Positions 14,301-43,400 of a stretch of DNA of 64,000 nt are shown piece after piece. The stretch is taken from positions 684,395-748,394 of the forward strand of contig NIVC01000255.1 of the NCBI GenBank assembly GCA_002269645.1. The letters are read 5' to 3'. Position 1 is the stretch's first letter. Each line of letters opens with the position of its first letter. The notes beneath the pieces were generated by a model. That model made no database searches. It was not told the origin of the DNA and worked only from the letters and a program-made list of their open reading frames with translations. A program made the position numbers and the translations under genes. Source of the DNA: Macrostomum lignano (lineage: Eukaryota).

Positions 14301-16252
14301 CACAGGCTACATGCAGAGCAAGGCGATGGTGGACGCGAACGGCACCGTGTTTTGGCCCCACCCGCCAAGCTGCGATCCACCTGCAAGATCGACATCACGT
14401 ATTTCCCGTTTGACGATCAGATTTGCACCATGAAGTTCGGCTCGTGGACCTACGATGGTTATCAAGTGAACATCACCAAGAAGTTGGTTAGATCTTCTGT
14501 TCAACCATCGAGAAATTTTTATTTAAATCACGTGACATCTTGACAACACTTTCAGGCGCGAGGAAGTGGACTTTCAAATTATGTTCAAAGCGGAGAGTGG
14601 AATCTGATTCGAATCGATGTGGAACGGCAGGAGGTGAGATCAGTGACCTGGATTTGGAACCTAAGGAAATTGATGTGGAACCTTAAGAAGTAGATATGGA
14701 ACCTTGGGAAGTAGATATGGAACTGATGGAAATAGACATGGAACTGATGGAAATAGACATGGAACTGATGGAAATAGATATGGAACTGATGGAAACAGAT
14801 ATGGAGCTGATGGAAATAAACATGGAACTGATGGAAATAGATATGGAACTGATGGAAATAGACATGGAACTGATGGAAATAGACATGGAACTGATGGAAA
14901 TAGACATGGAACTGATGGAAAAAGACATGGAACTGATGGAAATAGACATGGAACTGATGGAAATGGACTTGGAACTGATGGAAATAGACACGGAACTGAT
15001 GGAAATAGACATGGAACTGATGGAAATAGACACGGAACTGATGGAAATAGATATGGAACTGGAGTGAAATACTGCAATAAATCTATTCGAAACACCAGGG
15101 TACTTCGTTAGGAGTCTTACATGTTAGCAAGTATTGACGCGTATCTCGTAATTTTATTTAGTTTGACTAAACAAGGCCAACAAAAGGTATAAGTTTACAG
15201 AGCCTAGTAAACTTATTAACGCCGAGTACCCAGGGAATGGCAGTGGGCAGTCCAGCGGCCGCCCAAGTCTCTTTAATCAAATTTCTGCCTGGGAAGGCTG
15301 CTGCTGCAGCGGCCGAGCTCTCAATATTTGTGAAGTAGAATTTTGTCTGGACCGCTCCAGATGGTGTCGAGTGAGAGCAGAGCAGATCATGAACTTGATA
15401 GGAGCCTTGGAGCCTTGAGCAAAAGGTTCAATAAGTCTGCTTTGAGTTCTGTTACTGCATTGCAAAGTTGTTCAGCTCGGATGCTTGTTGATCTAGTCTA
15501 ATTTCCGGTCTGCTAAGGATCTATTCTCATCGATCGGGGGCTAATCTCAGCTGTATCAGACAAATCTAATCTCAGCGAAATCTAATCTGAGCTGTCTCAG
15601 GCAAAATCTAATCTCAGCTGTCTCAGACTAAATCTAATTTCAGCTGTATCAGGCTAAATCTAGTCTCAGCTAAATCTAATGTCAGCTGTCTCAGGCTAAA
15701 TCTAATCTCAGCTGTCTCACCTAAATCTAATTTAAGCTGTCTCACCTAAATCTAATCTCAGCTGTCTCAGGCTAAATCTAATCTCAGCTGTCTCAGGCTA
15801 AATCTAATCTCAGCTGTCTCAGGCTAAATCTAATCTCAGCTGTCTCAGGCTAAATCTAATCTCAGCTGTCTCAGGCTAAATCTAATCTCAGCTGTCTCAG
15901 GCTAAATCTAATCTCAGCTGTCTCAGGCTAAATCTAATATCAGCTAAATCTAATCTCAGCTAAATCTAATCTCAGCTGTCTCAGGCTAAATCTAATCTCA
16001 GCTGTCTCAGGCTAAAATCTATGAATCTCAGCTAAATCTAATCTCAGCTGTCTCAGGCTAAATCTAATCTCAGGTGTCTCAGTTAAATCTAACCCAAATG
16101 TCACCAGCCAATAAATAAAAAGCTCTACCTCTCCAAAACCATTCCAGACCGTCTACCCCATCAGCCGGTGCCCTACCCGGACATCAAGTTCCACATAGTG
16201 ATCCGCAGGCGCACCCTGTATACTGTTCAACATCATCTTCCCTGCCTGTGGC
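8310..16252 (+). CDS. Nicotinic acetylcholine receptor-like Cys-loop subunit, extracellular domain to start of M1 (isoform B; truncated by assembly gap)
   Basis: Exons 8310-8421 (signal peptide, phase 1), 10990/10993-11150 ([25 protein letters not shown]), 11264-11308 ([15 protein letters not shown]), 13233-13342 (EWHDERLHW...[10 protein letters not shown]), 14286-14482 (Cys-loop [24 protein letters not shown]), 14556-14633 (NYVQSGEW), 16148-16252 ([17 protein letters not shown]). Single-base deletions are needed at ~14357 and near the gap. Confidence 0.9.
8655..9870. repeat. 19-21-bp minisatellite (AAACTCTCACAAACTA[A/C]ACAG)n, nAChR intron 1
   Basis: Direct tandem periodicity; the unit shortens in the 3' half. 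Confidence 0.96.
10718..10942 (+). CDS. Alternative first coding exon (isoform A) of the nAChR-like gene: own signal peptide plus alpha1 helix and beta1 strand
   Basis: ATG at 10718, hydrophobic leader, then [42 protein letters not shown], ending at a phase-0 GTGAGT donor (10943). This is the homologous position to the end of exon 10990-11150. Confidence 0.8.
11514..11727. repeat. 46-bp tandem repeat, ~4.6 copies, nAChR intron
   Basis: AGTCTATGGCCAGCCCTGCTGACCAACCCAAAAGCTGGGCAGCGAT recurring with period 46. Confidence 0.92.
12389..13115. repeat. 23-bp minisatellite (TAGATGTGTCAGTAGTGCTTAAK)n
   Basis: Highly homogeneous tandem repeat. Confidence 0.97.
13350..14247. repeat. 23-bp minisatellite (ACTGACACACTGATTCTACAGAC)n filling a nAChR intron
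   Basis: Starts within ~10 nt of the donor at 13343. Confidence 0.97.
14690..15062. repeat. 21-bp minisatellite (ATGGAACTGATGGAAATAGAC)n
   Basis: Tandem periodicity; translates as spurious (MELMEID)n. Confidence 0.96.
15540..16092. repeat. ~26-bp minisatellite (CTAAATCTAATCTCAGCTGTCTCAGG)n
   Basis: Tandem periodicity. Confidence 0.95.
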
Positions 16253-17055: not shown

Positions 17056-17580
17056 AAGAGACGATCTGTTTTGGGTGAGTATTATCTGCTGTAGAAGTAT
17101 TGTACACCAGAGTACTTGTGTTACTTGGTAGAGCACAATTCAAAAGCAATGCAACAATCTCAGTGGCATTGTTGGGACAAAGCTACAAACGCAATGAATA
17201 GTAAACACAGCCCAGCCTAGCTCAAGGCTAGTAATTTGTTGGGCATTTATTGGGACATTGCAGCCAGGCCTATTTTTTGAACAGCATTTGTTGGGTCGCA
17301 CTTATTGGGACAATACTGATTCTAATCGCGACTACTTCTGAGTTCTGACTTTTCAAAACAGACCCAGCATTAGTTGAACACGTTCTATTAAAGGGTTCCT
17401 TTATAGCCTATTAATGATTACTAAAGCAAGCCTATCTTAATTGATTTTTTCCTCGCAGATTCTGAAGTCAGCCACGCCAGCGACATGCCTAAGAGACAAG
17501 AATGCGCTTTAACGATCAGCAGCGAGCATTCTGATCTCGCCGCTGCATCCGTCATTTTTCACTTGCTGCTGCAGCAGCAG

Positions 17581-17622
<42 letters not shown>

Positions 17623-18229
17623 GCTATCCGTGCAGGCAGTCAGTCTATTTGTGAATTTTCTGGTGGATCTGAAGAAAACCCGTCCGGCACAGGATTAAAG
17701 AGAAAGAGACGATCTGTTTTGGGTGAGTATTATCTGCTGTAGAAGTATTGTACACCAGAGTACTTGTGTTACTTGGTAGAGCACAATTCAAAAGCAATGC
17801 AACAATCTCAGTGGCATTGTTGGGACACAAGCTACAAACGCAATGAATAGTAAACACAGCCCAGCCTAGCTCAAGGCTAGTAATTTGTTGGGCATTTATT
17901 GGGACATTGCAGCCAGGCCTATTTTTGAACAGCATTTGTTGGGTCGCACTTATTGGGACAATACTGATTCTAATCGCGACTACTTCTGAGTTCTGACTTT
18001 TCAAAACAGACCCAGCATTAGTTGAACACGTTCTATTAAAGGGTTCCTTTATAGCCTATTAATGATTACTAAAGCAAGCCTATCTTAATTGATTTCTTTT
18101 CCTCGCAGATTCTGAAGTCAGCCACGCCAGCGACATGCCTAAGAGACAAGAATGCGCTTTAACGATCAGCAGCGAGCATTCTGATCTCGCCGCTGCATCC
18201 GTCATTTGGTTCACTTGCTGCTCACAAGC

Positions 18230-18265
<36 letters not shown>

Positions 18266-18872
18266 CTATCCGTGCAGGCAGTCAGTCTATTTGTGAATTT
18301 TCTGGTGGATCTGAAGAAAACCCGTCCGGCACAGGATTAAAGAGAAAGAGACGATCTGTTTTGGGTGAGTATTATCTGCTGTAGAAGTATTGTACACCAG
18401 AGTACTTGTGTTACTTGGTAGAGCACAATTCAAAAGCAATGCAACAATCTCAGTGGCATTGTTGGGACACAAGCTACAAACGCATGAATAGTAAACACAG
18501 CCCAGCCTAGCTCAAGGCTAGTAATTTGTTGGGCATTTATTGGGACATTGCAGCCAGGCCTATTTTTTGAACAGCATTTGTTGGGTCGCACTTATTGGGA
18601 CAATACTGATTCTAATCGCGACTACTTCTGAGTTCTGACTTTTCAAAACAGACCCAGCATTAGTTGAACACGTTCTATTAAAGGGTTCCTTTATAGCCTA
18701 TTAATGATTACTAAAGCAAGCCTATCTTAATTGATTTCTTTTCCTCGCAGATTCTGAAGTCAGCCACGCCAGCGACATGCCTAAGAGACAAGAATGCGCT
18801 TTAACGATCAGCAGCGAGCATTCTGATCTCGCCGCTGCATCCGTCATTTGGTTCACTTGCTGCTCACAAGCC

Positions 18873-18920
<48 letters not shown>

Positions 18921-19529
18921 GCTATCCGTGCAGGCAGTCAGTCTATTTGTGAATTTTCTGGTGGATCTGAAGAAAACCCGTCCGGCACAGGATTAAAGAG
19001 AAAGAGACGATCTGTTTTGGGTGAGTATTATCTGCTGTAGAAGTATTGTACACCAGAGTACTTGTGTTACTTGGTAGAGCACAATTCAAAAGCAATGCAA
19101 CAATCTCAGTGGCATTGTTGGGACACAAGCTACAAACGCAATGAATAGTAAACACAGCCCAGCCTAGCTCAAGGCTAGTAATTTGTTGGGCATTTATTGG
19201 GACATTGCAGCCAGGCCTATTTTTTGAACAGCATTTGTTGGGTCGCACTTATTGGGACAATACTGATTCTAATCGCGACTACTTCTGAGTTCTGACTTTT
19301 CAAAACAGACCCAGCATTAGTTGAACACGTTCTATTAAAGGGTTCCTTTATAGCCTATTAATGATTACTAAAGCAAGCCTATCTTAATTGATTTCTTTTC
19401 CTCGCAGATTCTGAAGTCAGCCACGCCAGCGACATGCCTAAGAGACAAGAATGCGCTTTAACGATCAGCAGCGAGCATTCTGATCTCGCCGCTGCATCCG
19501 TCATTTGGTTCACTTGCTGCTCACAAGCC

Positions 19530-19571
<42 letters not shown>

Positions 19572-20179
19572 CTATCCGTGCAGGCAGTCAGTCTATTTGT
19601 GAATTTTCTGGTGGATCTGAAGAAAACCCGTCCGGCACAGGATTAAAGAGAAAGAGACGATCTGTTTTGGGTGAGTATTATCTGCTGTAGAAGTATTGTA
19701 CACCAGAGTACTTGTGTTACTTGGTAGAGCACAATTCAAAAGCAATGCAACAATCTCAGTGGCATTGTTGGGACACAAGCTACAAACGCAATGAATAGTA
19801 AACACAGCCCAGCCTAGCTCAAGGCTAGTAATTTGTTGGGCATTTATTGGGACATTGCAGCCAGGCCTATTTTTTGAACAGCATTTGTTGGGTCGCACTT
19901 ATTGGGACAATACTGATTCTAATCGCGACTACTTCTGAGTTCTGACTTTTCAAAACAGACCCAGCATTAGTTGAACACGTTCTATTAAAGGGTTCCTTTA
20001 TAGCCTATTAATGATTACTAAAGCAAGCCTATCTTAATTGATTTCTTTTCCTCGCAGATTCTGAAGTCAGCCACGCCAGCGACATGCCTAAGAGACAAGA
20101 ATGCGCTTTAACGATCAGCAGCGAGCATTCTGATCTCGCCGCTGCATCCGTCATTTGGTTCACTTGCTGCTCACAGCGC

Positions 20180-20218
<39 letters not shown>

Positions 20219-20827
20219 GCTATCCGTGCAGGCAGTCAGTCTATTTGTGAATTTTCTGGTGGATCTGAAGAAAACCCGTCCGGCACAGGATTAAAGAGAA
20301 AGAGACGATCTGTTTTGGGTGAGTATTATCTGCTGTAGAAGTATTGTACACCAGAGTACTTGTGTTACTTGGTAGAGCACAATTCAAAAGCAATGCAACA
20401 ATCTCAGTGGCATTGTTGGGACACAAGCTACAAACGCAATGAATAGTAAACACAGCCCAGCCTAGCTCAAGGCTAGTAATTTGTTGGGCATTTATTGGGA
20501 CATTGCAGCCAGGCCTATTTTTTGAACAGCATTTGTTGGGTCGCACTTATTGGGACAATACTGATTCTAATCGCGACTACTTCTGAGTTCTGACTTTTCA
20601 AAACAGACCCAGCATTAGTTGAACACGTTCTATTAAAGGGTTCCTTTATAGCCTATTAATGATTACTAAAGCAAGCCTATCTTAATTGATTTCTTTTCCT
20701 CGCAGATTCTGAAGTCAGCCACGCCAGCGACATGCCTAAGAGACAAGAATGCGCTTTAACGATCAGCAGCGAGCATTCTGATCTCGCCGCTGCATCCGTC
20801 ATTTGGTTCACTTGCTGCTCACAAGCC

Positions 20828-20866
<39 letters not shown>

Positions 20867-21466
20867 GCTATCCGTGCAGGCAGTCAGTCTATTTGTGAAT
20901 TTTCTGGTGGATCTGAAGAAAACCCGTCCGGCACAGGATTAAAGAGAAAGAGACGATCTGTTTTGGGTGAGTATTATCTGCTGTAGAAGTATTGTACACC
21001 AGAGTACTTGTGTTACTTGGTAGAGCACAATTCAAAAGCAATGCAACAATCTCAGTGGCATTGTTGGGACACAAGCTACAAACGCAATGAATAGTAAACA
21101 CAGCCCAGCCTAGCTCAAGGCTAGTAATTTGTTGGGCATTTATTGGGACATTGCAGCCAGGCCTATTTTTTGAACAGCATTTGTTGGGTCGCACTTATTG
21201 GGACAATACTGATTCTAATCGCGACTACTTCTGAGTTCTGACTTTTCAAAACAGACCCAGCATTAGTTGAACACGTTCTATTAAAGGGTTCCTTTATAGC
21301 CTATTAATGATTACTAAAGCAAGCCTATCTTAATTGATTTCTTTTCCTCGCAGATTCTGAAGTCAGCACGCCAGCGACATGCCTAAGAGACAAGAATGCG
21401 CTTTAACGATCAGCAGCGAGCATTCTGATCTCGCCGCTGCATCCGTCATTTGGTTCACTTGCTGCT

Positions 21467-21513
<47 letters not shown>

Positions 21514-22112
21514 GCTATCCGTGCAGGCAGTCAGTCTATTGTGAATTTTCTGGTGGATCTGAAGAAAACCCGTCCGGCACAGGATTAAAGAGAAAGAGAC
21601 GATCTGTTTTGGGTGAGTATTATCTGCTGTAGAAGTATTGTACACCAGAGTACTTGTGTTACTTGGTAGAGCACAATTCAAAAGCAATGCAACAATCTCA
21701 GTGGCATTGTTGGGACACAAGCTACAAACGCAATGAATAGTAAACACAGCCCAGCCTAGCTCAAGGCTAGTAATTTGTTGGGCATTTATTGGGACATTGC
21801 AGCCAGGCCTATTTTTTGAACAGCATTTGTTGGGTCGCACTTATTGGGACAATACTGATTCTAATCGCGACTACTTCTGAGTTCTGACTTTTCAAAACAG
21901 ACCCAGCATTAGTTGAACACGTTCTATTAAAGGGTTCCTTTATAGCCTATTAATGATTACTAAAGCAAGCCTATCTTAATTGATTTCTTTTCCTCGCAGA
22001 TTCTGAAGTCAGCCACGCCAGCGACATGCCTAAGAGACAAGAATGCGCTTTAACGATCAGCAGCGAGCATTCTGATCTCGCCGCTGCATCCGTCATTTGG
22101 TTCACTTGCTGC

Positions 22113-22155
<43 letters not shown>

Positions 22156-22756
22156 GCTATCCGTGCAGGCAGTCAGTCTATTTGTGAATTTTCTGGTGGA
22201 TCTGAAGAAAACCCGTCCGGCACAGGATTAAAGAGAAAGAGACGATCTGTTTTGGGTGAGTATTATCTGCTGTAGAAGTATTGTACACCAGAGTACTTGT
22301 GTTACTTGGTAGAGCACAATTCAAAAGCAATGCAACAATCTCAGTGGCATTGTTGGGACACAAGCTACAAACGCAATGAATAGTAAACACAGCCCAGCCT
22401 AGCTCAAGGCTAGTAATTTGTTGGGCATTTATTGGGACATTGCAGCCAGGCCTATTTTTTGAACAGCATTTGTTGGGTCGCACTTATTGGGACAATACTG
22501 ATTCTAATCGCGACTACTTCTGAGTTCTGACTTTTCAAAACAGACCCAGCATTAGTTGAACACGTTCTATTAAAGGGTTCCTTTATAGCCTATTAATGAT
22601 TACTAAAGCAAGCCTATCTTAATTGATTTCTTTTCCTCGCAGATTCTGAAGTCAGCCACGCCAGCGACATGCCTAAGAGACAAGAATGCGCTTTAACGAT
22701 CAGCAGCGAGCATTCTGATCTCGCCGCTGCATCCGTCATTTGGTTCACTTGCTGCT

Positions 22757-22801
<45 letters not shown>

Positions 22802-23410
22802 GCTATCCGTGCAGGCAGTCAGTCTATTTGTGAATTTTCTGGTGGATCTGAAGAAAACCCGTCCGGCACAGGATTAAAGAGAAAGAGACGATCTGTTTTG
22901 GGTGAGTATTATCTGCTGTAGAAGTATTGTACACCAGAGTACTTGTGTTACTTGGTAGAGCACAATTCAAAAGCAATGCAACAATCTCAGTGGCATTGTT
23001 GGGACACAAGCTACAAACGCAATGAATAGTAAACACAGCCCAGCCTAGCTCAAGGCTAGTAATTTGTTGGGCATTTATTGGGACATTGCAGCCAGGCCTA
23101 TTTTTTGAACAGCATTTGTTGGGTCGCACTTATTGGGACAATACTGATTCTAATCGCGACTACTTCTGAGTTCTGACTTTTCAAAACAGACCCAGCATTA
23201 GTTGAACACGTTCTATTAAAGGGTTCCTTTATAGCCTATTAATGATTACTAAAGCAAGCCTATCTTAATTGATTTCTTTTCCTCGCAGATTCTGAAGTCA
23301 GCCACGCCAGCGACATGCCTAAGAGACAAGAATGCGCTTTAACGATCAGCAGCGAGCATTCTGATCTCGCCGCTGCATCCGTCATTTGGTTCACTTGCTG
23401 CTCACAAGCC

Positions 23411-23452
<42 letters not shown>

Positions 23453-24053
23453 GCTATCCGTGCAGGCAGTCAGTCTATTTGTGAATTTTCTGGTGGATCT
23501 GAAGAAAACCCGTCCGGCACAGGATTAAAGAGAAAGAGACGATCTGTTTTGGGTGAGTATTATCTGCTGTAGAAGTATTGTACACCAGAGTACTTGTGTT
23601 ACTTGGTAGAGCACAATTCAAAAGCAATGCAACAATCTCAGTGGCATTGTTGGGACACAAGCTACAAACGCAATGAATAGTAAACACAGCCCAGCCTAGC
23701 TCAAGGCTAGTAATTTGTTGGGCATTTATTGGGACATTGCAGCCAGGCCTATTTTTTGAACAGCATTTGTTGGGTCGCACTTATTGGGACAATACTGATT
23801 CTAATCGCGACTACTTCTGAGTTCTGACTTTTCAAAACAGACCCAGCATTAGTTGAACACGTTCTATTAAAGGGTTCCTTTATAGCCTATTAATGATTAC
23901 TAAAGCAAGCCTATCTTAATTGATTTCTTTTCCTCGCAGATTCTGAAGTCAGCCACGCCAGCGACATGCCTAAGAGACAAGAATGCGCTTTAACGATCAG
24001 CAGCGAGCATTCTGATCTCGCCGCTGCATCCGTCATTTGGTTCACTTGCTGCT

Positions 24054-24097
<44 letters not shown>

Positions 24098-24698
24098 GCT
24101 ATCCGTGCAGGCAGTCAGTCTATTTGTGAATTTTCTGGTGGATCTGAAGAAAACCCGTCCGGCACAGGATTAAAGAGAAAGAGACGATCTGTTTTGGGTG
24201 AGTATTATCTGCTGTAGAAGTATTGTACACCAGAGTACTTGTGTTACTTGGTAGAGCACAATTCAAAAGCAATGCAACAATCTCAGTGGCATTGTTGGGA
24301 CACAAGCTACAAACGCAATGAATAGTAAACACAGCCCAGCCTAGCTCAAGGCTAGTAATTTGTTGGGCATTTATTGGGACATTGCAGCCAGGCCTATTTT
24401 TTGAACAGCATTTGTTGGGTCGCACTTATTGGGACAATACTGATTCTAATCGCGACTACTTCTGAGTTCTGACTTTTCAAAACAGACCCAGCATTAGTTG
24501 AACACGTTCTATTAAAGGGTTCCTTTATAGCCTATTAATGATTACTAAAGCAAGCCTATCTTAATTGATTTCTTTTCCTCGCAGATTCTGAAGTCAGCCA
24601 CGCCAGCGACATGCCTAAGAGACAAGAATGCGCTTTAACGATCAGCAGCGAGCATTCTGATCTCGCCGCTGCATCCGTCATTTGGTTCACTTGCTGCT

Positions 24699-24742
<44 letters not shown>

Positions 24743-25342
24743 GCTATCCGTGCAGGCAGTCAGTCTATTTGTGAATTTTCTGGTGGATCTGAAGAAAACC
24801 CGTCCGGCACAGGATTAAAGAGAAAGAGACGATCTGTTTTGGGTGAGTATTATCTGCTGTAGAAGTATTGTACACCAGAGTACTTGTGTTACTTGGTAGA
24901 GCACAATTCAAAAGCAATGCAACAATCTCAGTGGCATTGTTGGGACACAAGCTACAAACGCAATGAATAGTAAACACAGCCCAGCCTAGCTCAAGGCTAG
25001 TAATTTGTTGGGCATTTATTGGGACATTGCAGCCAGGCCTATTTTTTGAACAGCATTTGTTGGGTCGCACTTATTGGGACAATACTGATTCTAATCGCGA
25101 CTACTTCTGAGTTCTGACTTTTCAAAACAGACCCAGCATTAGTTGAACACGTTCTATTAAAGGGTTCCTTTATAGCCTATTAATGATTACTAAAGCAAGC
25201 CTATCTTAATTGATTTCTTTTCCTCGCAGATTCTGAAGTCAGCAACCGCCAGCGACATGCCTAAGAGACAAGAATGCGCTTTAACGATCAGCAGCGAGCA
25301 TTCTGATCTCGCCGCTGCATCCGTCATTTGGTTCACTTGCTC

Positions 25343-25381
<39 letters not shown>

Positions 25382-26638
25382 GCTATCCGTGCAGGCAGTC
25401 AGTCTATTTGTGAATTTTCTGGTGGATCTGAAGAAAACCCGTCCGGCACAGGATTAAAGAGAAAGAGACGATCTGTTTTGGGTGAGTATTATCTGCTGTA
25501 GAAGTATTGTACACCAGAGTACTTGTGTTACTTGGTAGAGCACAATTCAAAAGCAATGCAACAATCTCAGTGGCATTGTTGGGACACAAGCTACAAACGC
25601 AATGAATAGTAAACACAGCCCAGCCTAGCTCAAGGCTAGTAATTTGTTGGGCATTTATTGGGACATTGCAGCCAGGCCTATTTTTTGAACAGCATTTGTT
25701 GGGTCGCACTTATTGGGACAATACTGATTCTAATCGCGACTACTTCTGAGTTCTGACTTTTCAAAACAGACCCAGCATTAGTTGAACACGTTCTATTAAA
25801 GGGTTCCTTTATAGCCTATTAATGATTACTAAAGGCAAGCCTATCTTAATTGATTTCTTTTCCTCGCAGATTCTGAAGTCAGCACGCCAGCGACATGCCT
25901 AAGAGACAAGAATGCGCTTTAACGATCAGCAGCGAGCATTCTGATCTCGCCGCTGCATCCGTCATTTGGTTCACTTGCTGCTCACAAGCCGCAGCAGCAG
26001 CCAGCAGCAGCAGCAGCAGCAGCAGCAGCCGCTATCCGTGCAGGCAGTCAGTCTATTTGTGAATTTTCTGGTGGATCTGAAGAAAACCCGTCCGGCACAG
26101 GATTAAAGAGAAAGAGACGATCTGTTTTGGGTGAGTATTATCTGCTGTAGAAGTATTGTACACCAGAGTACTTGTGTTACTTGGTAGAGCACAATTCAAA
26201 AGCAATGCAACAATCTCAGTGGCATTGTTGGGACACAAGCTACAAACGCAATGAATAGTAAACACAGCCCAGCCTAGCTCAAGGCTAGTAATTTGTTGGG
26301 CATTTATTGGGACATTGCAGCCAGGCCTATTTTTTGAACAGCATTTGTTGGGTCGCACTTATTGGGACAATACTGATTCTAATCGCGACTACTTCTGAGT
26401 TCTGACTTTTCAAAACAGACCCAGCATTAGTTGAACACGTTCTATTAAAGGGTTCCTTTATAGCCTATTAATGATTACTAAGCAAGCCTATCTTAATTGA
26501 TTTCTTTTCCTCGCAGATTCTGAAGTCAGCCACGCCAGCGACATGCCTAAGAGACAAGAATGCGCTTTAACGATCAGCAGCGAGCATTCTGATCTCGCCG
26601 CTGCATCCGTCATTTGGTTCACTTGCTGCTCACAAGCC

Positions 26639-26677
<39 letters not shown>

Positions 26678-27286
26678 GCTATCCGTGCAGGCAGTCAGTC
26701 TATTTGTGAATTTTCTGGTGGATCTGAAGAAAACCCGTCCGGCACAGGATTAAAGAGAAAGAGACGATCTGTTTTGGGTGAGTATTATCTGCTGTAGAAG
26801 TATTGTACACCAGAGTACTTGTGTTACTTGGTAGAGCACAATTCAAAAGCAATGCAACAATCTCAGTGGCATTGTTGGGACACAAGCTACAAACGCAATG
26901 AATAGTAAACACAGCCCAGCCTAGCTCAAGGCTAGTAATTTGTTGGGCATTTATTGGGACATTGCAGCCAGGCCTATTTTTTGAACAGCATTTGTTGGGT
27001 CGCACTTATTGGGACAATACTGATTCTAATCGCGACTACTTCTGAGTTCTGACTTTTCAAAACAGACCCAGCATTAGTTGAACACGTTCTATTAAAGGGT
27101 TCCTTTATAGCCTATTAATGATTACTAAGGCAAGCCTATCTTAATTGATTTCTTTTCCTCGCAGATTCTGAAGTCAGCCACGCCAGCGACATGCCTAAGA
27201 GACAAGAATGCGCTTTAACGATCAGCAGCGAGCATTCTGATCTCGCCGCTGCATCCGTCATTTGGTTCACTTGCTGCTCACAAGCC

Positions 27287-27325
<39 letters not shown>

Positions 27326-27933
27326 GCTATCCGTGCAGGCAGTCAGTCTATTTGTGAATTTTCTGGTGATCTGAAGAAAACCCGTCCGGCACAGGATTAA
27401 AGAGAAAGAGACGATCTGTTTTGGGTGAGTATTATCTGCTGTAGAAGTATTGTACACCAGAGTACTTGTGTTACTTGGTAGAGCACAATTCAAAAGCAAT
27501 GCAACAATCTCAGTGGCATTGTTGGGACACAAGCTACAAACGCAATGAATAGTAAACACAGCCCAGCCTAGCTCAAGGCTAGTAATTTGTTGGGCATTTA
27601 TTGGGACATTGCAGCCAGGCCTATTTTTTGAACAGCATTTGTTGGGTCGCACTTATTGGGACAATACTGATTCTAATCGCGACTACTTCTGAGTTCTGAC
27701 TTTTCAAAACAGACCCAGCATTAGTTGAACACTTTCTATTAAAGGGTTCCTTTATAGCCTGTTAATGATTACTAAGGCAAGCCTATCTTAATTGATTTCT
27801 TTTCCTCGCAGATTCTGAAGTCAGCAACGCCAGCGACATGCCTAAGAGACAAGAATGCGCTTTAACGATCAGCAGCGAGCATTCTGATCTCGCCGCTGCA
27901 TCCGTCATTTGGTTCACTTGCTGCTCACAAGCC

Positions 27934-30083: not shown

Positions 30084-32883
30084 ATGCTGACAAGCCAAAT
30101 GTCTAACATCAGCGCGGGAGACAGCTCCAGCAGTGACGATGAAGGCCGCAGTCGGCGGTGTCGCCAACAGCAGCAGCTGCCAGACATGGAGAAGTTCAGC
30201 GCCCAGCTCACCAAGTACTGCAGGCGGGTGCTGACCTGCCTGCCCTCGCACTGCAGCGGCTACGATCAGAACAGATTGGTGTTTGCTTGGTTTGCCATCT
30301 CCACTATGGACATGCTGGATAGGACTCAGGAGCTAAATAGGTATCAGTTCTGATCATCTAGTCTCAGTCTAATCTATCATCTAATCTCATTCTAATCTAT
30401 CGTCTAATCTCATCCTAATCTATCATCTAATCTCATTATAATCCAGCATCTAATCTTACATTTTCGTCAAGCATTTAATCTCGCCTTAATCCCACATCTA
30501 ATATCACCCTAATCAGACTTCTAATATCACCATAATCTAGCATCCAATCTCACCCTAATCTAGCATCTAATCTCACCCTAATCCAGCATCTAATGTAATC
30601 TCACCCTAATCCAGCATCTAATGTAATCTCACCCTAATCTAGCATCTTATCTCACCCTAATCCAGCAACTAATCTCACCCTAATACCACATCTAATCTCA
30701 CCCTAATCAAACATCTAATCTCACCCTAAACCGGCATTTAATCTCACCCTCAACCCGCACAACGCCTCCCGCAGGCAGGAGATCATAGACTGGGTGTACA
30801 GCCTTCAGATTCTCCCCAGCTCCGGCCGGCCCGTTGCCAACTGCGGCTTCCGCGGCGCTCCCCTGCTGGGCAGCCCGGCGGATCCGCACCTGGACGCCGA
30901 GAATCCGCTGCCGTACGATGCCAGCCACCTCACCATGGTATTCGCCGGCCTGGGCATCCTGCTCATGCTCGGCGACGATCTTCAACGAGTCGATCGAGAC
31001 GCCGTTCTTAGCGGAGTCGCGGCCCTGCAGACGCCGGCGGGCTGCTTCACGGCTGGCAAATTTGCTCCGGAAAGCGACTTGCGATTCGTGTTCTCCGCCT
31101 GCGTGTCCTGCTATTATTTGAACGATTTCACCAAAATCGACGTTGACAGAAGTGTGAGCGAATTTTGTTTAAATGTCGTTATATATTCTTTATGAAATCC
31201 AAAACTGACGTTTCTAAGAAAATTCTAGCCGCTTTTGTTTCTGGGGAATTCGAACCTCGTCCGTTTCTACTAAGTTGCAATATGCTTTCTAGGAAACACC
31301 AGTTGTTGCGTTTCTAAGAAATTCTTGTAGAACCCGTTTCTAAGAAGTTCCTGTCGCAACCGTTTCTAGGAAATTTCCTATCGCATCCGTTTCTAGGAAA
31401 TTCCTATCGATCCGTTTCTAGGAAATTCCTATCGCATCCGTTTCTATGAAATTCCTATCGCATCCGTTTCTAAGAAATTCCTATCGCACCCGTTTCTAAG
31501 AAATTCCTATCGCACCCGGCCCGTTTCTAAGAAATTCCTATCGTATCTGTTTCTAAGAAATTCCTATTGCACCCGTTTCTAAGAAATTCCTATCGCACCC
31601 GTTTCTAAGAAATTCCTATCGCACCCGTTTCTAAGAAATTCCTATCGCACCCGTTTCTAAGAAATTCCTATCGCACCCGTTTCTAATAAATTCCTATCGC
31701 ACCCGTTTCTAAGAAATTCCTATCGCACCCGTTTCTAAGAAATTCCTATCGCATCCGTTTATGAAATTCAAATTTGTCCTGTTTCCGGGAAATTATAAAT
31801 TTTGTTTTTCAAGTTCCAACGAAACTCCAATCCGGCCCTGTGGCCCTGCAAACGTCGACAAGGACCGCAAGCACTGGTTTAGAAAATTCCAACGAGCCAT
31901 TTCTTGGAACGCCCCCCCACCTGTTGCTGATTATTCTTGGTAGTTTTATTTCTGCTGTTTCCAGGAGATTCAAATTTCTATTTCTGAAAAACTTCATAAT
32001 CTGTAATTTCGACTGGATATCTAAAATGAGAGAATCTCAAACTGCCATTCTATATTTGAGAAATCCTAAATTGTTTTTAAAAATCCATCAACTGAAATTT
32101 CTAAGAAAATATAACGGTCGTTTCTAGGAAATCTCTGAAACCGTTTCTTGGAAATCTCAACATGTCATTTCGATATATTTTTGAGGAAATTTTTTTGAAA
32201 ACTGACTAAACGGTATGTTTTATACAGCAATATTATTTTCAGTGTCACTAATTCTACTTAACATTTGCGATTGTTCTACTTCAAGTAGAAATGCACACAT
32301 TTTGCTGCAATTTTTTGCTATAAATTGTGAAAAAATGATAAATTATCTGTAGGTCGCCTTCCTGCTGGCCTGCCAGACCTACGAAGGCGGCTTCGGTCAG
32401 CGGCCCGGCTCTGAGGCTCACGGCGGCTCCACCTTCTGCGCCATCGCTTCGTTGAAACTTCTCGGCAGGCTGGACTCCGCCCTGCCAGCCGACAGTCGCC
32501 AACGTTCGCGCCTGTTGCGCTGGCTTTGCCAGCGTCAGCACCGCGGCTTCCACGGCCGACCGTACAAGGACGACGATTCCTGCTATACGTTCTGGATTGG
32601 AGCCTCCCTGGCAGCCCTTGGCCGGGCCAATCTGATTGACCGATCGGCCCTTGTTGAATTCGTTTTCAGCTGCTACAGCGGCATGGAGGGCGGCTTCTCT
32701 AAGTATCCGGGCGACTCCGCCGACCCGCTGCACACCTACCTGGCTCTGGCTGGCTTGGCCGCCCTCCGCCTCGAGGACGAGCGGCTGGAACCCATCCGGC
32801 CTGAGGCCAACATCACCGAGAGGGCTCACCTGCATATGCTGGCCCTGCATCGGGCTGCTGCCGCTTCTGCTGCTTCTCACTGA
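30084..32883 (+). CDS. PGGT1B: Geranylgeranyl transferase type-1 subunit beta, 3 exons, ~388 aa
   Basis: Exons 30084-30340, 30775-31153, 32353-32883 sum to 1167 nt, in frame. Motifs IIDWVYSLQ, CGFRG, YDASHLTM, ESDLRFVFSAC, EAHGGSTFCAIASL, GFHGRPYK, DSCYTFWIGA, GGFSKYP, DPLHTY. Zinc ligands D/C/H are intact. The true start could be the second ATG (30099). Confidence 0.95.
30350..30750. repeat. ~21-bp minisatellite (CTCACCCTAATCCAGCATCTAAT-like), PGGT1B intron 1
   Basis: Tandem periodicity that sharpens toward the 3' end. Confidence 0.88.
31200..31760. repeat. ~26-bp minisatellite (CCGTTTCTAAGAAATTCCTATCGCAC)n, PGGT1B intron 2
   Basis: Tandem periodicity. Confidence 0.92.
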
Positions 32884-37874: not shown

Positions 37875-40800
37875 ATGAATCCGCATGTCCTTAGCAACGG
37901 TATTCCGTTGCCAATGGACCACGCTGAAACGCTGGACCTGATCTGCAGTTTAGAGCGAGAAATTTTCTGTTCGGCAACCGACACCACAGATTCTGAGGAC
38001 AGATGGAGGTCTGCGACATCTGCGGCTGCTGAAACTTCCGTGTCGGTTGGTGCTGTTGTGTCGCCCGAGTCGTCTGAAGGCGACCCGGATCTCATTGTTC
38101 AGCAACAGCAGGAGCAGCAGACTAAAGCAGCCGCCACCATAACACTGGTTAAGTTGGAGCCGTCACAAAACCGGCAAAAAGTTGAACAGGAGGAAGTCGG
38201 TAGCCATGCCAACAACAACAACACCAACAATAATAACAACAATGAGGATGCAGCCACTGCTGCTGCTGCTGATAACGATTTGACACCGCCTCGAGTGTAC
38301 AAACCTTGCGTTGTGTGCGGCGACAAGAGCTCCGGTTATCACTACGGTGTCAGCTCGTGCGAAGGCTGCAAGGTGAGGCACCAGTTTTAAGATTTGTGAA
38401 GTTTAAAATGTGATCTGTTGCTTAGTGTTAGTCTTGGCCTGTAGTGTAATACGTGACCTGTAGCTTAGGGTTAGTCTTGGCCTGTAGTTTAACATGTGAT
38501 CTGTAGCTTAGGGTTAGTCTTGGCCTGTAGTGTAACATGTGATCTGTAGCTTAGGGTTAGTCTTGGCCTGTAGTTTAACATGTGATCTGTAGCTTAGGGT
38601 TAGTCTTGGCCTGTAGTGTAACATGTGATCTGTAGCTTAGGGTTAGTCTTGGCCTGTAGTGTAACATGTGATCTGCAGCTTATAGGTTGATCTTGGCCTG
38701 TAGTGTAACACCAGGGTTGATCTAGGCCCCTGGAGTGCAGCCTACAAAGAACATGTACTTTGATAATCGTACACATAAAACGTTCCAACCAAACGTTCTT
38801 ACAGGGCTTCTTCCGTCGCAGCATTCAGAAGAGTCTCGTGTACAGCTGTCAGAAATCCGATCAATGCGAGGTGACCAGACAGACCAGGAACAGGTGTCAG
38901 TCTTGCCGGCTGAGAAAGTGCATCGCTGGCGGCATGTCTAGGGAGGCTGTTCGAACCGATGCGACATCATCGGGAACAGTGAGAACAGCTCAAGCCTGCC
39001 AGCAGCAGCAGCAGCAGCAGTTGCTGTCAGAGTCAGACACTCAATTGTTGGAATCACTGAGCCGAGCCTACGCAGAGCTGATTGACAGACGAGTTGACAA
39101 GAATTCCGTCGAAGAAGAATCTGTTGCAGATTCTGAGGCGCAGATAAGCGGAGACAATGAAACTGATGCGGGGGCGGAGAGAGTCTGGCAGCTCACTGAC
39201 CTGCTGTCGGTGAGTTCACAGTCGCATTATACTGGCTGTTTATTGAATAATAATGTGGCATGTGTAGGATACTACTATAAGTAAACAGAACGGATATGTC
39301 ACCGTATTTGTTTATCTAAATGTGCTCAAGTTGCTAAATCAGTGCTCAACCAGTATACGTGTTTGAGTCAGTGTACCGATGGGGCCTCATAGTCTGTCAG
39401 TGACTCAATTACATCATAATACACTTAATTAGACCATAAAGAACTCGATTAGACAATCAGTGACTCAATTAGACCACGAATTACTCAATTAGACCACCAA
39501 TGACTCAATTAGACCATCAATGACTCAATTAGACCATGAATGACTCAATTAGACCATCAGTGACTCAACTGGTGCCCTAGTGACTCAGTCAGAATGTCAC
39601 TGATGACTCAACTACTGTTGCCAGACTCAATCAGTGCATCCCAGTGACTCAAGCCTCATCGCCAACTCCCCCAGGTGTCGTCAGTGCAGCGCGTGATCTC
39701 ATTCGCCGAGCGCTGCCCGAGTTCAGCAGCCTCCTGCCCGAAGATCAGAGCACCCTATTGAAGTGCGCGATGCACGAAATCCTCGTGCTGCAGCTGGCCA
39801 GCAGCTACGACAGCCAGACTGACCGATTCCAGTTCTCGTCAACCAGCATCAGCTCCGCCGGGCTTGAGGCTCTGGGATTTCGGCATATTCTGCACAATCT
39901 GGCCCAGATTGGCAGCAGCTTGGCGCGCCACCGACTTGTCAGCGAGGAGCTGGCGCTGCTGGCAGCCGTGGCCATCTTTGCCGACGGTGAGTCCGGCCAG
40001 CTCAGCGCTGTGTACCGTCTGACACAGCTTCAGTGCCCGCAGCTGCCTGCATCTACTATGAGTAGCTCTTGTCTCATTCTGTTCCGTTCTTTCTTCCATA
40101 ACTCGCTGTCTTCCTACTCTCACTCTCTATCGGAATCTGCATCTCACTCTCTCTCTTACCCTCCCTCTTACTGCCCTCTCACTCTCCCTCTCGCTCTCCT
40201 CTCACTCTCCTCTCACTCTCTCACTCTCTATCGGAATCTGCATCTCACTCTCTCTCTTACCCTCCCTCTTACTGCCCTCTCAATCTCCCTCTCGCTCTCC
40301 TTCTCACTCTCCTCTCTCACTCTCCCCTCTCACTCTTCCCTCTCACTCTCCCCTCTCACTCTCCCCTCTCACTCTCCCCTCTCACTCTCCCTCTCACTCT
40401 CCCCTCTCACTCTCCCTCTCACTCTCCCCTCTCAATCTCTTCTCTCACTCTCCCCTCTCACTCTCCCCTCTCACTCTCCCCTCTCACTCTCCCCTCTCAC
40501 TCTCCCCTCTCACTCTCCCCTCTCACTCTCCCCTCTCACTCTCCCCTCTCACTCTCCCCTCTCACTCTCCCCTCTCACTCTCCCCTCTCACTCTCCCCTC
40601 TCAATCTCTTCTCTCACTCTCCCCTCTCACTCTCCCCTCTCACTCTCCCCTCTCACTCTCCCCTCTCACTCTCCCCTCTCACTCTCCCCTCTCACTCTCC
40701 CTCTCAATCTCTTCTCTCACTCTCCCCTCTCACTCTCCCCTCTCACTCTCCCCTCTCACTCTCCCCTCTCACTCACTCATTTTCTCCCAGTTTTCCTTTC

Positions 40801-42344
40801 CTCTTCCTATCCCTACTCAATGGTCCTCAGTCACACTGTCTGCACCAGTTTCCGCTTTCACTATTCTCCCATGCTCCCATCCTAATGCCCCGTCTCCAGA
40901 TTCGCAAATTAATCATTTAAATGCATTTCTATTATAATGATGCGAGCCCAATTCTACCAGGGGGATCTCTGAATTGACTTGAATTGAAAACAAAACTGCA
41001 GATCACATGGAGCTGAAGGACCCAGATCGCGTGTCCCAGTGCCAGCAGAAAATCCTCGGCTTGCTGCTGCGCTACCTCAGAGCTGCCCATCCGAACGATC
41101 GGGTCCGATTGGCCAGGATCGTCTCCACTGTTGTGCAGCTCAGGGAGGTGTCAGTCAAAGGTATGCAGTTTGATTGCGCAACATCGTCTCACCAACATGC
41201 AGCGCTGACGGCAGCTCTGCCCATTCCACTGACTCCTGAGCAGATGCAAGCGCGCCAATACCGTACTCATTCACACGCTCACCTCAGTCTCACTTCCAGT
41301 CTCATCCCCCAGTCTCACCTCAGTCTCATCTCCAGTCTCATCCCGTCTCATCCCAGTCTCATCCCCCAGTCTCATCCCCCAGTCTCACCTCAGTCTCATC
41401 CCCAGTCTCATCCTGAGTCTCACTCCCAGTCTCATCCTGAGTCTCATCCTGAGTCTCACTCCCAGTCTCATCCTGAGTCTCATCCTGAGTCTCACTCCCA
41501 GTCTCACCCCCAGTCTCATCCTGAGTCTCACTCCCAGTATCACTCCCAGTCTCACCCCCAGTCTCACCACCAGTCTCATCCCACAGTCTCACCCCCAGTC
41601 TCATCCCCCAGTCTCACTCCCAGTCTCATCCCCCAGTCTCACCTCAGTCTCATCCCCAGTCTCACCTTAGTCTTATCCCAAGTCTCATCCTCAGTCTCAC
41701 CCACAGTCTCATCCCCCAGTTTTATCTCCAGTCTCACACCCAGTCTCACCTCAGTCTCACCCCCAGTCTCATCCTGAGTCTCACTCCCAGTCTCACTCCC
41801 AGTCTCATCCCCCAGTCTCATCCCCAGTCTCATCTCCAGTCTTATCCCAAGTCTCATCCTCAGTCTCACCCACAGTCTCATCCCCCAGTTTTATCCCCAG
41901 TCTAACCCCCAGTCTCGCCCCAGTCTCACCCCCAGTCTCATCCTGAGTCTCACTTCCAGTCTCATCCCCCAGTCTCACCCCAGTCTCACCCCCAGTCTCA
42001 TCCCACAGTCTCACCCCAGTCTCATCCCCCAGTCTCACTCCCAGTCTCATCCCACAGTCTCACCCCCAGTCTCATCCCCCAGTCTCACTCTCAGTCTCAT
42101 CCCCCAGTCTCACCTCAGTCTCATCCCCAGTCTCATCTCCAGTCTTATCCCAAGTCTCATCCTCAGTCTCACCCACAGTCTCACCCCAGTCTTTCCAGTC
42201 TCATCCCAATCTATTCTGCATTCTGTCTCGCGCTCCGCAGGTTCTGGCAACGTGCTGCAGCTGAAGATGCAGCACGCAGGCGGCGAGGTCCCCCCTCTGG
42301 TGGCGGAGATCATGGACCGCGAAGACATCATCTCGTATCCGTGA
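37875..42344 (+). CDS. RAR: Retinoic acid receptor (NR1B)-like nuclear receptor, 5 exons, ~492 aa
   Basis: Exons 37875-38372, 38805-39209, 39675-39986, 41002-41160, 42241-42344. [32 protein letters not shown]|[15 protein letters not shown]...[23 protein letters not shown] closely follows the RAR pattern ([26 protein letters not shown]). LBD: [39 protein letters not shown] (AF-2, cf. RARa LKMEIPGSMPPLIQEML). One C appears missing at ~39713. Confidence 0.88.
38410..38715. repeat. 43-bp tandem repeat, RAR intron 1
   Basis: TGTGATCTGTAGCTTAGGGTTAGTCTTGGCCTGTAGTKTAACA starting at 38495, 38538, 38581. Confidence 0.92.
39395..39645. repeat. Degenerate ~20-bp TGACTCAATTAGACCA repeat, RAR intron 2
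   Basis: Repeated TGACTCAA cores. Confidence 0.8.
40130..40770. repeat. 13-bp CT-rich minisatellite (CTCACTCTCCCCT)n, RAR intron 3
   Basis: Tandem periodicity. Confidence 0.94.
41280..42210. repeat. ~12-bp minisatellite (CAGTCTCATCCC)n, RAR intron 4
   Basis: Tandem periodicity with higher-order duplications. Confidence 0.94.
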
Positions 42345-42894: not shown

Positions 42895-43400
42895 CCTTGT
42901 GTCACTCCCATCCCTCCGTGTGTCACTCCCATCCCCGTGTGTCACTCCCATCCCGTGTCAGTTCCATCACCGTGTGTCACTCCCACCCCTCCGTGTGTCA
43001 CTCCCATCCCTCAGTGTGTCACTCCCATCCCCGTGTGTCACTCCCATCCCTCCGTGTATCACTCCTATCCCTCCGTGTGTCACTCCCATCCCCGTGTATC
43101 ACTCCCATCCCTCCGTGTGTCACTCCAATCCCTCCGTGTGTCACTCCCACCCCTCCGTGTGTCACTCCCATCCCCGTGTGTCACTCCCATCCCTCCATGT
43201 GTCACTCCCATCCCCCCGTGTATCACTCCCATCCCTCAGTGTGTCACTCCCATCCGCGTGTATCACTCCCATCCGCGTGTATCACTCCCATCCGCGTGTA
43301 TCGCTCCCATCCGCGTGTATCACTCCCATCCCCGTGTCACTCCCATCCGCGTGTGTCACTCTCATCCCCATGTGTCACCCCCATCCGCGTGTGTCACACC
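42895..43400. repeat. ~20-22-bp minisatellite (GTGTCACTCCCATCCCTCCGT)n
   Basis: Tandem periodicity. Confidence 0.92.

Follow-up and report, generated by a model that had tools for sequence, protein, structure and literature searches.

The DNA analysed here, called the window, is a stretch of 64,000 nucleotides from Macrostomum lignano (contig NIVC01000255.1, positions 684,395 to 748,394). It carries a five-exon nuclear-receptor gene on the + strand at 37875-42344 of the 64-kb window. Judged from its sequence, the gene is probably a retinoic acid receptor (RAR, NR1B) orthologue or derivative, fast-evolving and of a spiralian lineage, with no close relative in the searched collections. The charged residues that anchor the carboxylate of retinoic acid (RA) are all replaced by neutral ones, the coregulator groove is altered, and one base is missing from the reading frame in helix 3. 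The reading that we favour, with about an even chance of being right, is a highly derived RA-insensitive RAR, of the mollusc kind taken further, which would act independently of ligand if the gene is intact.

Identity of the receptor

The DNA-binding domain (DBD) matched the solved RAR DBDs with 125-132 bits (E 6e-36 to 6e-38), and the next family, ROR, scored 105 bits (2e-29). The P-box CEGCKG and all eight zinc-coordinating Cys are present, and zinc finger 1 is 93-97% identical to that of other RARs by tblastn. The Pfam domains zf-C4 (7e-31) and Hormone_recep (1e-12) were both detected in the gene product. When the ligand-binding domain (LBD) was searched with HMMER, the top PDB match was the Platynereis dumerilii RAR 6eu9 (8e-32). 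Human RARs were near 1e-24 and LXRbeta was at 6e-23; the margin of the human RARs over LXR is small.

Among 5.8 billion proteins, the best matches were spiralian RARs (chiton, nemertean, bivalve, annelid and brachiopod), which are 35-39% identical overall and 28-35% in the LBD. In the protein collections searched, no match to the RAR product exceeded 39% identity. An exhaustive HMMER pass of the LBD against 1.84 billion cluster representatives also placed RARs first, none of them more than 34% identical to the LBD; its top full-length matches were RARs at 1e-26 to 1e-22, with an LXR-like protein at ~1e-18. Several motifs in the gene are of spiralian type: LASxYD, SVKG, VLQL, R416 and the C-terminal ...DREDIISYP-stop (consensus ...DRxENVCIP-stop). 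An Rfam search gave no match.

Loss of the carboxylate anchor

Residues are numbered after human RARalpha; the numbering reproduced the isotype markers S232/I270/V395 and agrees with the PDB RARalpha chain. Residues were compared in a 33-sequence MAFFT alignment of this gene and 32 other RARs. R276 and S287 of human RARalpha form hydrogen bonds with the carboxylate of the retinoid (PMC5821490). In this gene, K234, R272 and R276 of the anchor set are all neutral and S287 alone is kept. R272 is Arg in 32/32 other RARs. R276 is Arg in 27/32, the exceptions being Cys in Reishia clavigera and Owenia, Ser in Dimorphilus, and Lys in Tubulanus and Lingula.

A preliminary description of this DNA, made by hand alignment to human RARalpha, had listed the pocket substitutions F228T, C235S, C265M, L266H, R272Q and R276S. 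Each was recovered in the 33-sequence alignment and is no alignment artefact, and K234S and R394N add to the list. All seven residues that it gave as kept (S232, L269, F286, S287, G391, V395 and L398) are conserved, as is W225. Its gap-free stretches, from W225 to F249 and from D256 to S287, were reproduced by HMMER, which aligned the gene to RARalpha/beta without gaps from W225 to just past S287. C265 and L266, which are Met and His here, are invariant in all other RARs aligned, RA-responsive ones included. On a list of 25 pocket sites compiled for this analysis, which is separate from the published 25-residue counts, 14/25 differ from human RARalpha and 11/25 are kept. The codons concerned are as follows.

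39678..39683, + strand: K234 and C235 equivalents, both Ser (MAFFT, codon map)
39770..39775, + strand: C265 and L266 equivalents, Met-His
39791..39793, + strand: R272 equivalent, CAG = Gln
39803..39805, + strand: R276 equivalent (retinoate carboxylate anchor), AGC = Ser
39824..39826, + strand: T283 position, gene-specific Arg in the beta-strand before F286/S287
39833..39838, + strand: F286 and S287 equivalents, conserved
39881..39895, + strand: R303-H304...H307 (GFRHILH) at the start of helix 6, adjoining pocket residue F302

New basic residues of the LBD cluster around the beta-strand and helix 6. H266, R283, R303, H304 and H307 are basic or His gains seen in none or at most one other aligned RAR, and position 303 is Gly in 31/32 of the others. 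From their positions, R283, R303, H304 and H307 could serve as a nearby basic anchor, the kind of residue that the preliminary description had said would refute its reading.

Helix 5 at 39764-39775 reads C-A-M-H, versus A-A-C-L in other RARs. Its Cys, Met and His lie on one turn and make three potential metal- or haem-ligating side chains, a curiosity, as nothing supports a cofactor. The His-coordinated ligand raised in the preliminary description has L266H as its single basis and is speculation.

Structure prediction, which had been proposed as a check, supported the fold. AlphaFold2 with a multiple sequence alignment gave a canonical LBD fold with a predicted local distance difference test (pLDDT) score of 80.7 and a template-modelling (TM) score of ~0.8 to RAR and LXR holo structures. 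The single-sequence AlphaFold2 model had a pLDDT of 42.6 and was uninformative.

Because R276, R272 and K234 are neutral and S287 alone is left, nanomolar, vertebrate-style RA binding is very unlikely, and the canonical chordate mode of RA binding is, on these residues, excluded for this receptor. The preliminary description had gone further and held that RA is probably not bound. This stands as far as the vertebrate clamp is concerned, which is gone, but not as a general conclusion, because the anchor predicts little outside chordates: the Platynereis RAR binds RA without R276, and mollusc RARs with R276/S287 fail to bind it. In the Platynereis RAR crystal, RA is rotated by ~90 degrees and its carboxylate lies between the N-terminal regions of helices 3 and 6 (H3 and H6) without hydrogen bonds; R276 is unused for RA, and the affinity is micromolar (PMC5821490). 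Mollusc RARs that keep R276/S287 showed no RA binding and behave as constitutive repressors with RXR (PMC7827873, PMC5398557). The Priapulus RAR differs at 14/25 pocket residues and retains its RA response, and the rotifer RAR keeps 3/25 (PMC6947571). Judged from these receptors, the anchor residue is neither necessary nor sufficient for RA binding outside chordates. Anchor loss alone is neither new nor decisive, such losses being already known in invertebrates.

Changes in the coregulator groove

Groove residues were taken from a published list for RARalpha, in which K244 and E412 form the charge clamp (PMC2938230). V240, K244, F249, Q257, I258, K262, L409, E412 and M413 are identical in 32/32 other RARs, and L261 in 31/32. 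This invariant set spans the RA-insensitive mollusc receptors and Dimorphilus. Four changes, V240I, K244E, I258S and M413I, were found in this gene only. K262, E412 and the AF-2 (activation function 2) core LVAEIM are conserved.

39708-39710, + strand: K244 charge-clamp codon, GAG = Glu, at the frameshift site in helix 3
39749..39751, + strand: I258 equivalent, Ser, in the coregulator groove

When all one-base insertions at the frameshift site were enumerated, codon 244 became E, D, R, G, A or V and never K. The AF-2 helix had been described as intact, and its core PPLVAEIMD is indeed present. The coactivator surface had been described as kept as well; this was not borne out, as the four changes leave the AF-2 helix, E412 and K262. 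As read from the sequence, the groove is not intact despite the AF-2 helix, and the earlier suggestion of a new ligand, or of ligand-independent activation, acting through a kept coactivator surface loses its footing. Because corepressors dock in the same groove, both activation and repression may be altered.

Uneven divergence along the protein

We counted changes at near-invariant columns, defined in the LBD as those at least 90% invariant in 47 other RARs. In the LBD, 39/80 such columns are changed here, compared with 26/83 in Dimorphilus, 12-14 in bryozoans and ≤6 in most others. Zinc finger 1 has 0 changes at near-invariant RAR columns. Finger 2 and the T/A box have 13/44 changed, where other RARs have ≤4.

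38952-38975, + strand: T/A box RTDATSSG in place of the basic run RNDRNKKK, exon B

The contrast between finger 1 (38286-38372) and finger 2 with the T/A box (38802-38975) lies within one domain, and the D-box reads QKSDQ. The pattern suggests that half-site recognition is kept and that dimer geometry or nuclear-localisation features have drifted. The altered pocket belongs to an acceleration that takes in everything downstream of zinc finger 1.

Compared with human RARalpha/beta/gamma, the gene shares the domain order, P-box, finger 1, LBD fold and AF-2 core, and helices 3-5 align without gaps. It has ~25% LBD identity to them, and K234, R272, R276, R394, K244, I258 and the T/A box are lost. 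The mollusc RARs (Nucella lapillus, Reishia/Thais clavigera and Crassostrea gigas, among others) likewise combine a protostome RAR-type DBD with pocket substitutions incompatible with RA (PMC7827873, PMC5398557), and the Reishia RAR likewise has no Arg at 276 (Cys there, Ser here). However, the mollusc LBDs are ~55-60% identical to human and annelid RARs, keep R272, K244 and I258 and have ≤6 near-invariant changes. The present LBD, 28-35% identical to its best-matching RARs, with 39/80 columns changed and a broken frame, is not like them in this respect.

The Platynereis RAR (6eu9), the best solved match to this LBD, shares LASxYD, SVKG and VLQL. It differs in keeping K234, R272, R276 and S287 (unused for the carboxylate), in having Val228 and an intact groove, and in being activated by micromolar RA (PMC5821490). 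The Dimorphilus gyrociliatus RAR is the second most divergent in the set and also has Ser276 (LISSYS, versus LASSYD here), but it keeps R272, K244, I258 and the rest of the groove, and it is not among the top BLAST matches of this LBD. By description, the rotifer (Brachionus) RAR has a strongly divergent LBD with 3/25 pocket residues, against 11/25 of another list here. The phoronid RAR, also by description, has a divergent LBD but, unlike this gene, keeps R278, with S289A (PMC6947571 for both). On these residues, the present gene is neither the rotifer nor the phoronid one.

Gene structure and the one-base gap

Each of the four introns starts with GT and ends with AG, and the phases of the junctions (0, 0, 1 and 1) are compatible. 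With the frame repaired, the gene has 492 codons and no in-frame stop, the frameshift being the sole lesion. We looked for a second nuclear-receptor gene or a duplicated exon, exon C included, by window-wide tblastn and found none. The exons and their main features are listed here.

37875..38372, + strand: exon A, A/B domain from the first in-frame Met (MNPHV..., putative start codon) and zinc finger 1
38358-38372, + strand: P-box CEGCK at the end of exon A, with the GT donor at 38373
38805..39209, + strand: exon B, zinc finger 2, degenerate T/A box, poly-Q hinge, helix 1 and start of helix 3; AG acceptor and GTGAGT donor, phase 0
39186, 39195 and 39207, + strand: helix-3 start codons in exon B, W225, T228 and S232 respectively
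39210..39674, + strand: intron B/C, 465 bp, with a 20-bp tandem repeat array at 39397-39587
39675..39986, + strand: exon C, LBD helices 3-8, with most of the altered pocket and coregulator-groove residues
39708..39718, + strand: frameshift site GAG CGC TG CCC; codon 246 has 2 nucleotides only, 39714-39715
41002..41160, + strand: exon D, helices 9-10/11, ending REVSVK-G; phase-1 junctions on both sides
42241..42344, + strand: exon E, end of helix 11 (G391, N394, V395 and L398) and AF-2 helix
42291-42317, + strand: AF-2 helix PPLVAEIMD, exon E
42342-42344, + strand: stop TGA after the spiralian-type C-terminus ...DREDIISYP, exon E

The span 39181-39860 given for the pocket in the preliminary description takes in the 465-bp intron. 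The surroundings of the gene are metazoan genomic DNA, with short, repeat-laden introns. Short tandem arrays fill every RAR intron and the 3' flank (38400-38710, 39397-39587, 40142-40774, 41285-42192 and 42898-43397), with units of 43 bp x7, 20 bp x8, 13 bp x50, 12 bp x75 and 19 bp x25. The CT-rich arrays among them give long spurious open reading frames (ORFs) rich in Ser, Leu and Pro.

Two bases lie between codon 245 (CGC, 39711-39713) and codon 247 (CCC, 39716-39718). In the translation of 38805-39209 + 39675-39986, 13 residues of exon C are followed by the 2-nucleotide codon and then by 42 residues. The possible frame readings were scored against a hidden Markov model of 47 other RARs. Three one-base repairs scored 361-363 bits, the reading through an in-frame +4 donor scored 346 bits, and the sequence as written scored 214 bits. 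The repairs (..ER-L-PEF; ..ER-C-PEF, via a longer CCC run; and ..RA-L-PEF) differ by ≤2 bits and are indistinguishable. The repaired readings score best, so exon C upstream of the gap has evolved in the frame requiring a correction. One C had earlier been restored at ~39713; the one-base gap is real, at 39714-39715, but the identity of the base does not follow, as the three repairs are equal.

Frame rescue by splicing was considered and rejected as the ancestral gene structure: the sole in-frame donor, 4 nucleotides downstream (TGA/GTTCAC), is very poor, and its reading falls 15-17 bits below the repaired ones. No AG acceptor was found that gives exon C the downstream frame together with the phase-0 GTGAGT donor. 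The missing base is genuine in the window sequence as given, and no other choice of splice sites does away with it. The gap adjoins the CCC run at 39716-39718, a plausible site for a sequencing indel. The ~185 codons 3' of the shift stay open over three exons, and the gap is the single lesion in ~1.5 kb of coding sequence. Apart from it, ~490 codons, every splice site and the AF-2 helix are intact, and for this reason we took it for an assembly or allelic error or else for a lesion of very recent date.

Interpretation

In the favoured reading, finger 1 has been conserved perfectly while finger 2, the T/A box and the whole LBD diverged far faster than in the other RARs compared. Within this global divergence K234, R272 and R276 went to neutral residues, and K244 and I258 of the groove changed radically. 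The receptor would be insensitive to RA in the manner of the mollusc RARs. If the gene is intact, its product would be a ligand-independent DNA-binding factor; RXR would probably be its partner, its role would most plausibly be that of a repressor or a silent partner, and its docking of cofactors would be altered. RXR heterodimerisation and repression are uncertain because the T/A box and D-box are unusually divergent. In molluscs, the repression is reported to be relieved by an RXR agonist.

Several points weigh against this reading. The unrepaired frame meets a stop 16 codons on, in helix 3, and gives a 329-aa product. The radical changes at invariant groove residues and the loss of the basic run of the T/A box look like relaxed constraint. 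The two neighbouring genes, for geranylgeranyltransferase type I beta (GGTase-I beta; two exons, ~290 aligned codons) and a bestrophin (four exons), are without frameshift; the assembly thus has no obvious load of indels, and a real lesion is mildly favoured over a generally error-prone assembly. R276 is dispensable for holding RA in the annelid-type pose (PMC5821490). In a crude neighbour-joining tree (BLOSUM62 distance) a long branch at the RAR base leads to the gene, with long-branch behaviour; the bootstrap was split between a position as sister to all RARs (43%) and one beside the LXR-like outgroup (54%). The nearest matches, at 39% identity, are too distant for measuring selection.

The main competitor, less probable than the favoured reading and still to be taken seriously, is decay. 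The gene would be a young pseudogene, with a real frameshift, an untranslated LBD and prior relaxed constraint, or else a duplicate in decay, a conserved RAR lying at another place in the genome. The codon-246 gap and its product ending in helix 3 fit this explanation, as do the lack of a canonical alternative splice restoring the frame, the lack of a duplicate exon C in the window and the intact frames of the GGTase-I beta and bestrophin genes. The losses of K244, I258, R272 and the T/A box, unparalleled among the RARs compared, point the same way. However, the one lesion in ~1.5 kb stands beside canonical splice sites and ~185 open downstream codons over three exons, and the gap lies next to a CCC run where a sequencing indel is plausible. 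The eight zinc Cys, P-box, AF-2 core, K262, E412 and the LBD signature F..PEF..L..DQ..LLK are all retained. Divergence this large without a stop codon implies a long period under selection.

There is a small chance that the gene encodes an intact, functional RAR-derived orphan receptor, of a fast-evolving spiralian lineage, with a remodelled groove. In such a receptor the cavity would be neutral and lined with Ser, Gln and His, or the anchor would have moved to R283/R303, and either a non-acidic ligand or RA in a new pose would be bound.

We consider it doubtful that the gene is a functional receptor retuned to a non-acidic ligand, which the preliminary description had thought possible, with a neutral, hydroxyl-rich carboxylate end (S234, S235, Q272, S276, S287 and N394) and the helix-5 Met-His pair. 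The clamp-end substitutions are all small, polar and uncharged rather than bulky and pocket-filling, the LBD fold is predicted confidently, and the AF-2 core is intact. Yet the ligand is hypothetical, the groove that would transmit activation is damaged (K244E, I258S), the divergence is global and not focused on the pocket, and the frame is broken.

Little likelihood also attaches to a retained ancestral role as a low-affinity retinoid sensor, of annelid/priapulid type, that would hold RA in a rotated, carboxylate-independent pose possibly aided by R283/R303/H304. The Platynereis RAR, in which the carboxylate sits free of hydrogen bonds and is flanked by the N-terminal regions of H3 and H6 (PMC5821490), gives a precedent, and Platynereis is the nearest solved LBD. 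The Priapulus RAR responds to RA with 14/25 pocket residues different (PMC6947571), and this gene also differs at 14/25 of the list of this analysis and has gained R283, R303, H304 and H307. Against it, Thr stands at 228 where the responsive protostome RARs have Val/Ile, and three helix-5 residues that every other aligned RAR keeps, the responsive ones included (C265, L266 and R272), are changed. Mollusc RARs with far fewer changes are already non-binding (PMC5398557, PMC7827873).

Other features of the window

30839-31186 + 32296-32880, + strand: GGTase-I beta gene just upstream of the RAR gene, two or more exons, frame unbroken, Pfam Prenyltrans 4e-55
59678-51589, - strand: bestrophin-family gene, exons 59678-59403, 56280-56044, 53688-53416 and 51690-51589, Pfam positions 1-320
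17400-27700: ~648-bp unit in ~15 head-to-tail copies
10685-14540, + strand: exons of a Cys-loop (nicotinic-type) receptor ligand-binding domain
78-1155, - strand: two ORF pieces with weak von Willebrand factor A matches below the Pfam cut-off, running off the window start

The GGTase-I beta product is 43-52% identical to its best matches in the protein collections. The bestrophin gene is followed by a long low-complexity C-terminal ORF to ~50986; it is 25-41% identical to human BEST1. The ~648-bp units were seen through repeated identical ORFs, their period being above the 500-bp limit of Tandem Repeats Finder. Inside each unit lies a (GCN)n/(CAG)n microsatellite, which translates to poly-Ala, poly-Gln or poly-Cys according to the frame. 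In the Cys-loop receptor region, the ORFs 10685-10963 and 10947-11204 both match profile positions 1-40 and may be a duplicated or alternative first exon.

Implications

Extreme erosion of an RAR pocket is already on record in a rotifer (PMC6947571), and flatworms have been described as having no RAR (PMC8363021). Among the ~50 RARs compared, the LBD described here is the most eroded, and the gene is the only one in which invariant cofactor-groove residues are changed alongside a perfect first zinc finger. RAR evolution is a standard example of how the binding of ligands arises, is tuned and disappears. The ancestral RAR is thought to have been a low-affinity sensor; chordates gained the high-affinity arginine clamp, and molluscs lost binding. 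To our knowledge, RAR has been lost in leeches, flatworms, most ecdysozoans and larvaceans. An 'RAR' annotation in this genome is no evidence for RAR-mediated RA signalling. Should the gene prove expressed and intact, it would illustrate how much an RAR can drift and yet remain a DNA-binding factor; otherwise, it would be an RAR caught during loss.

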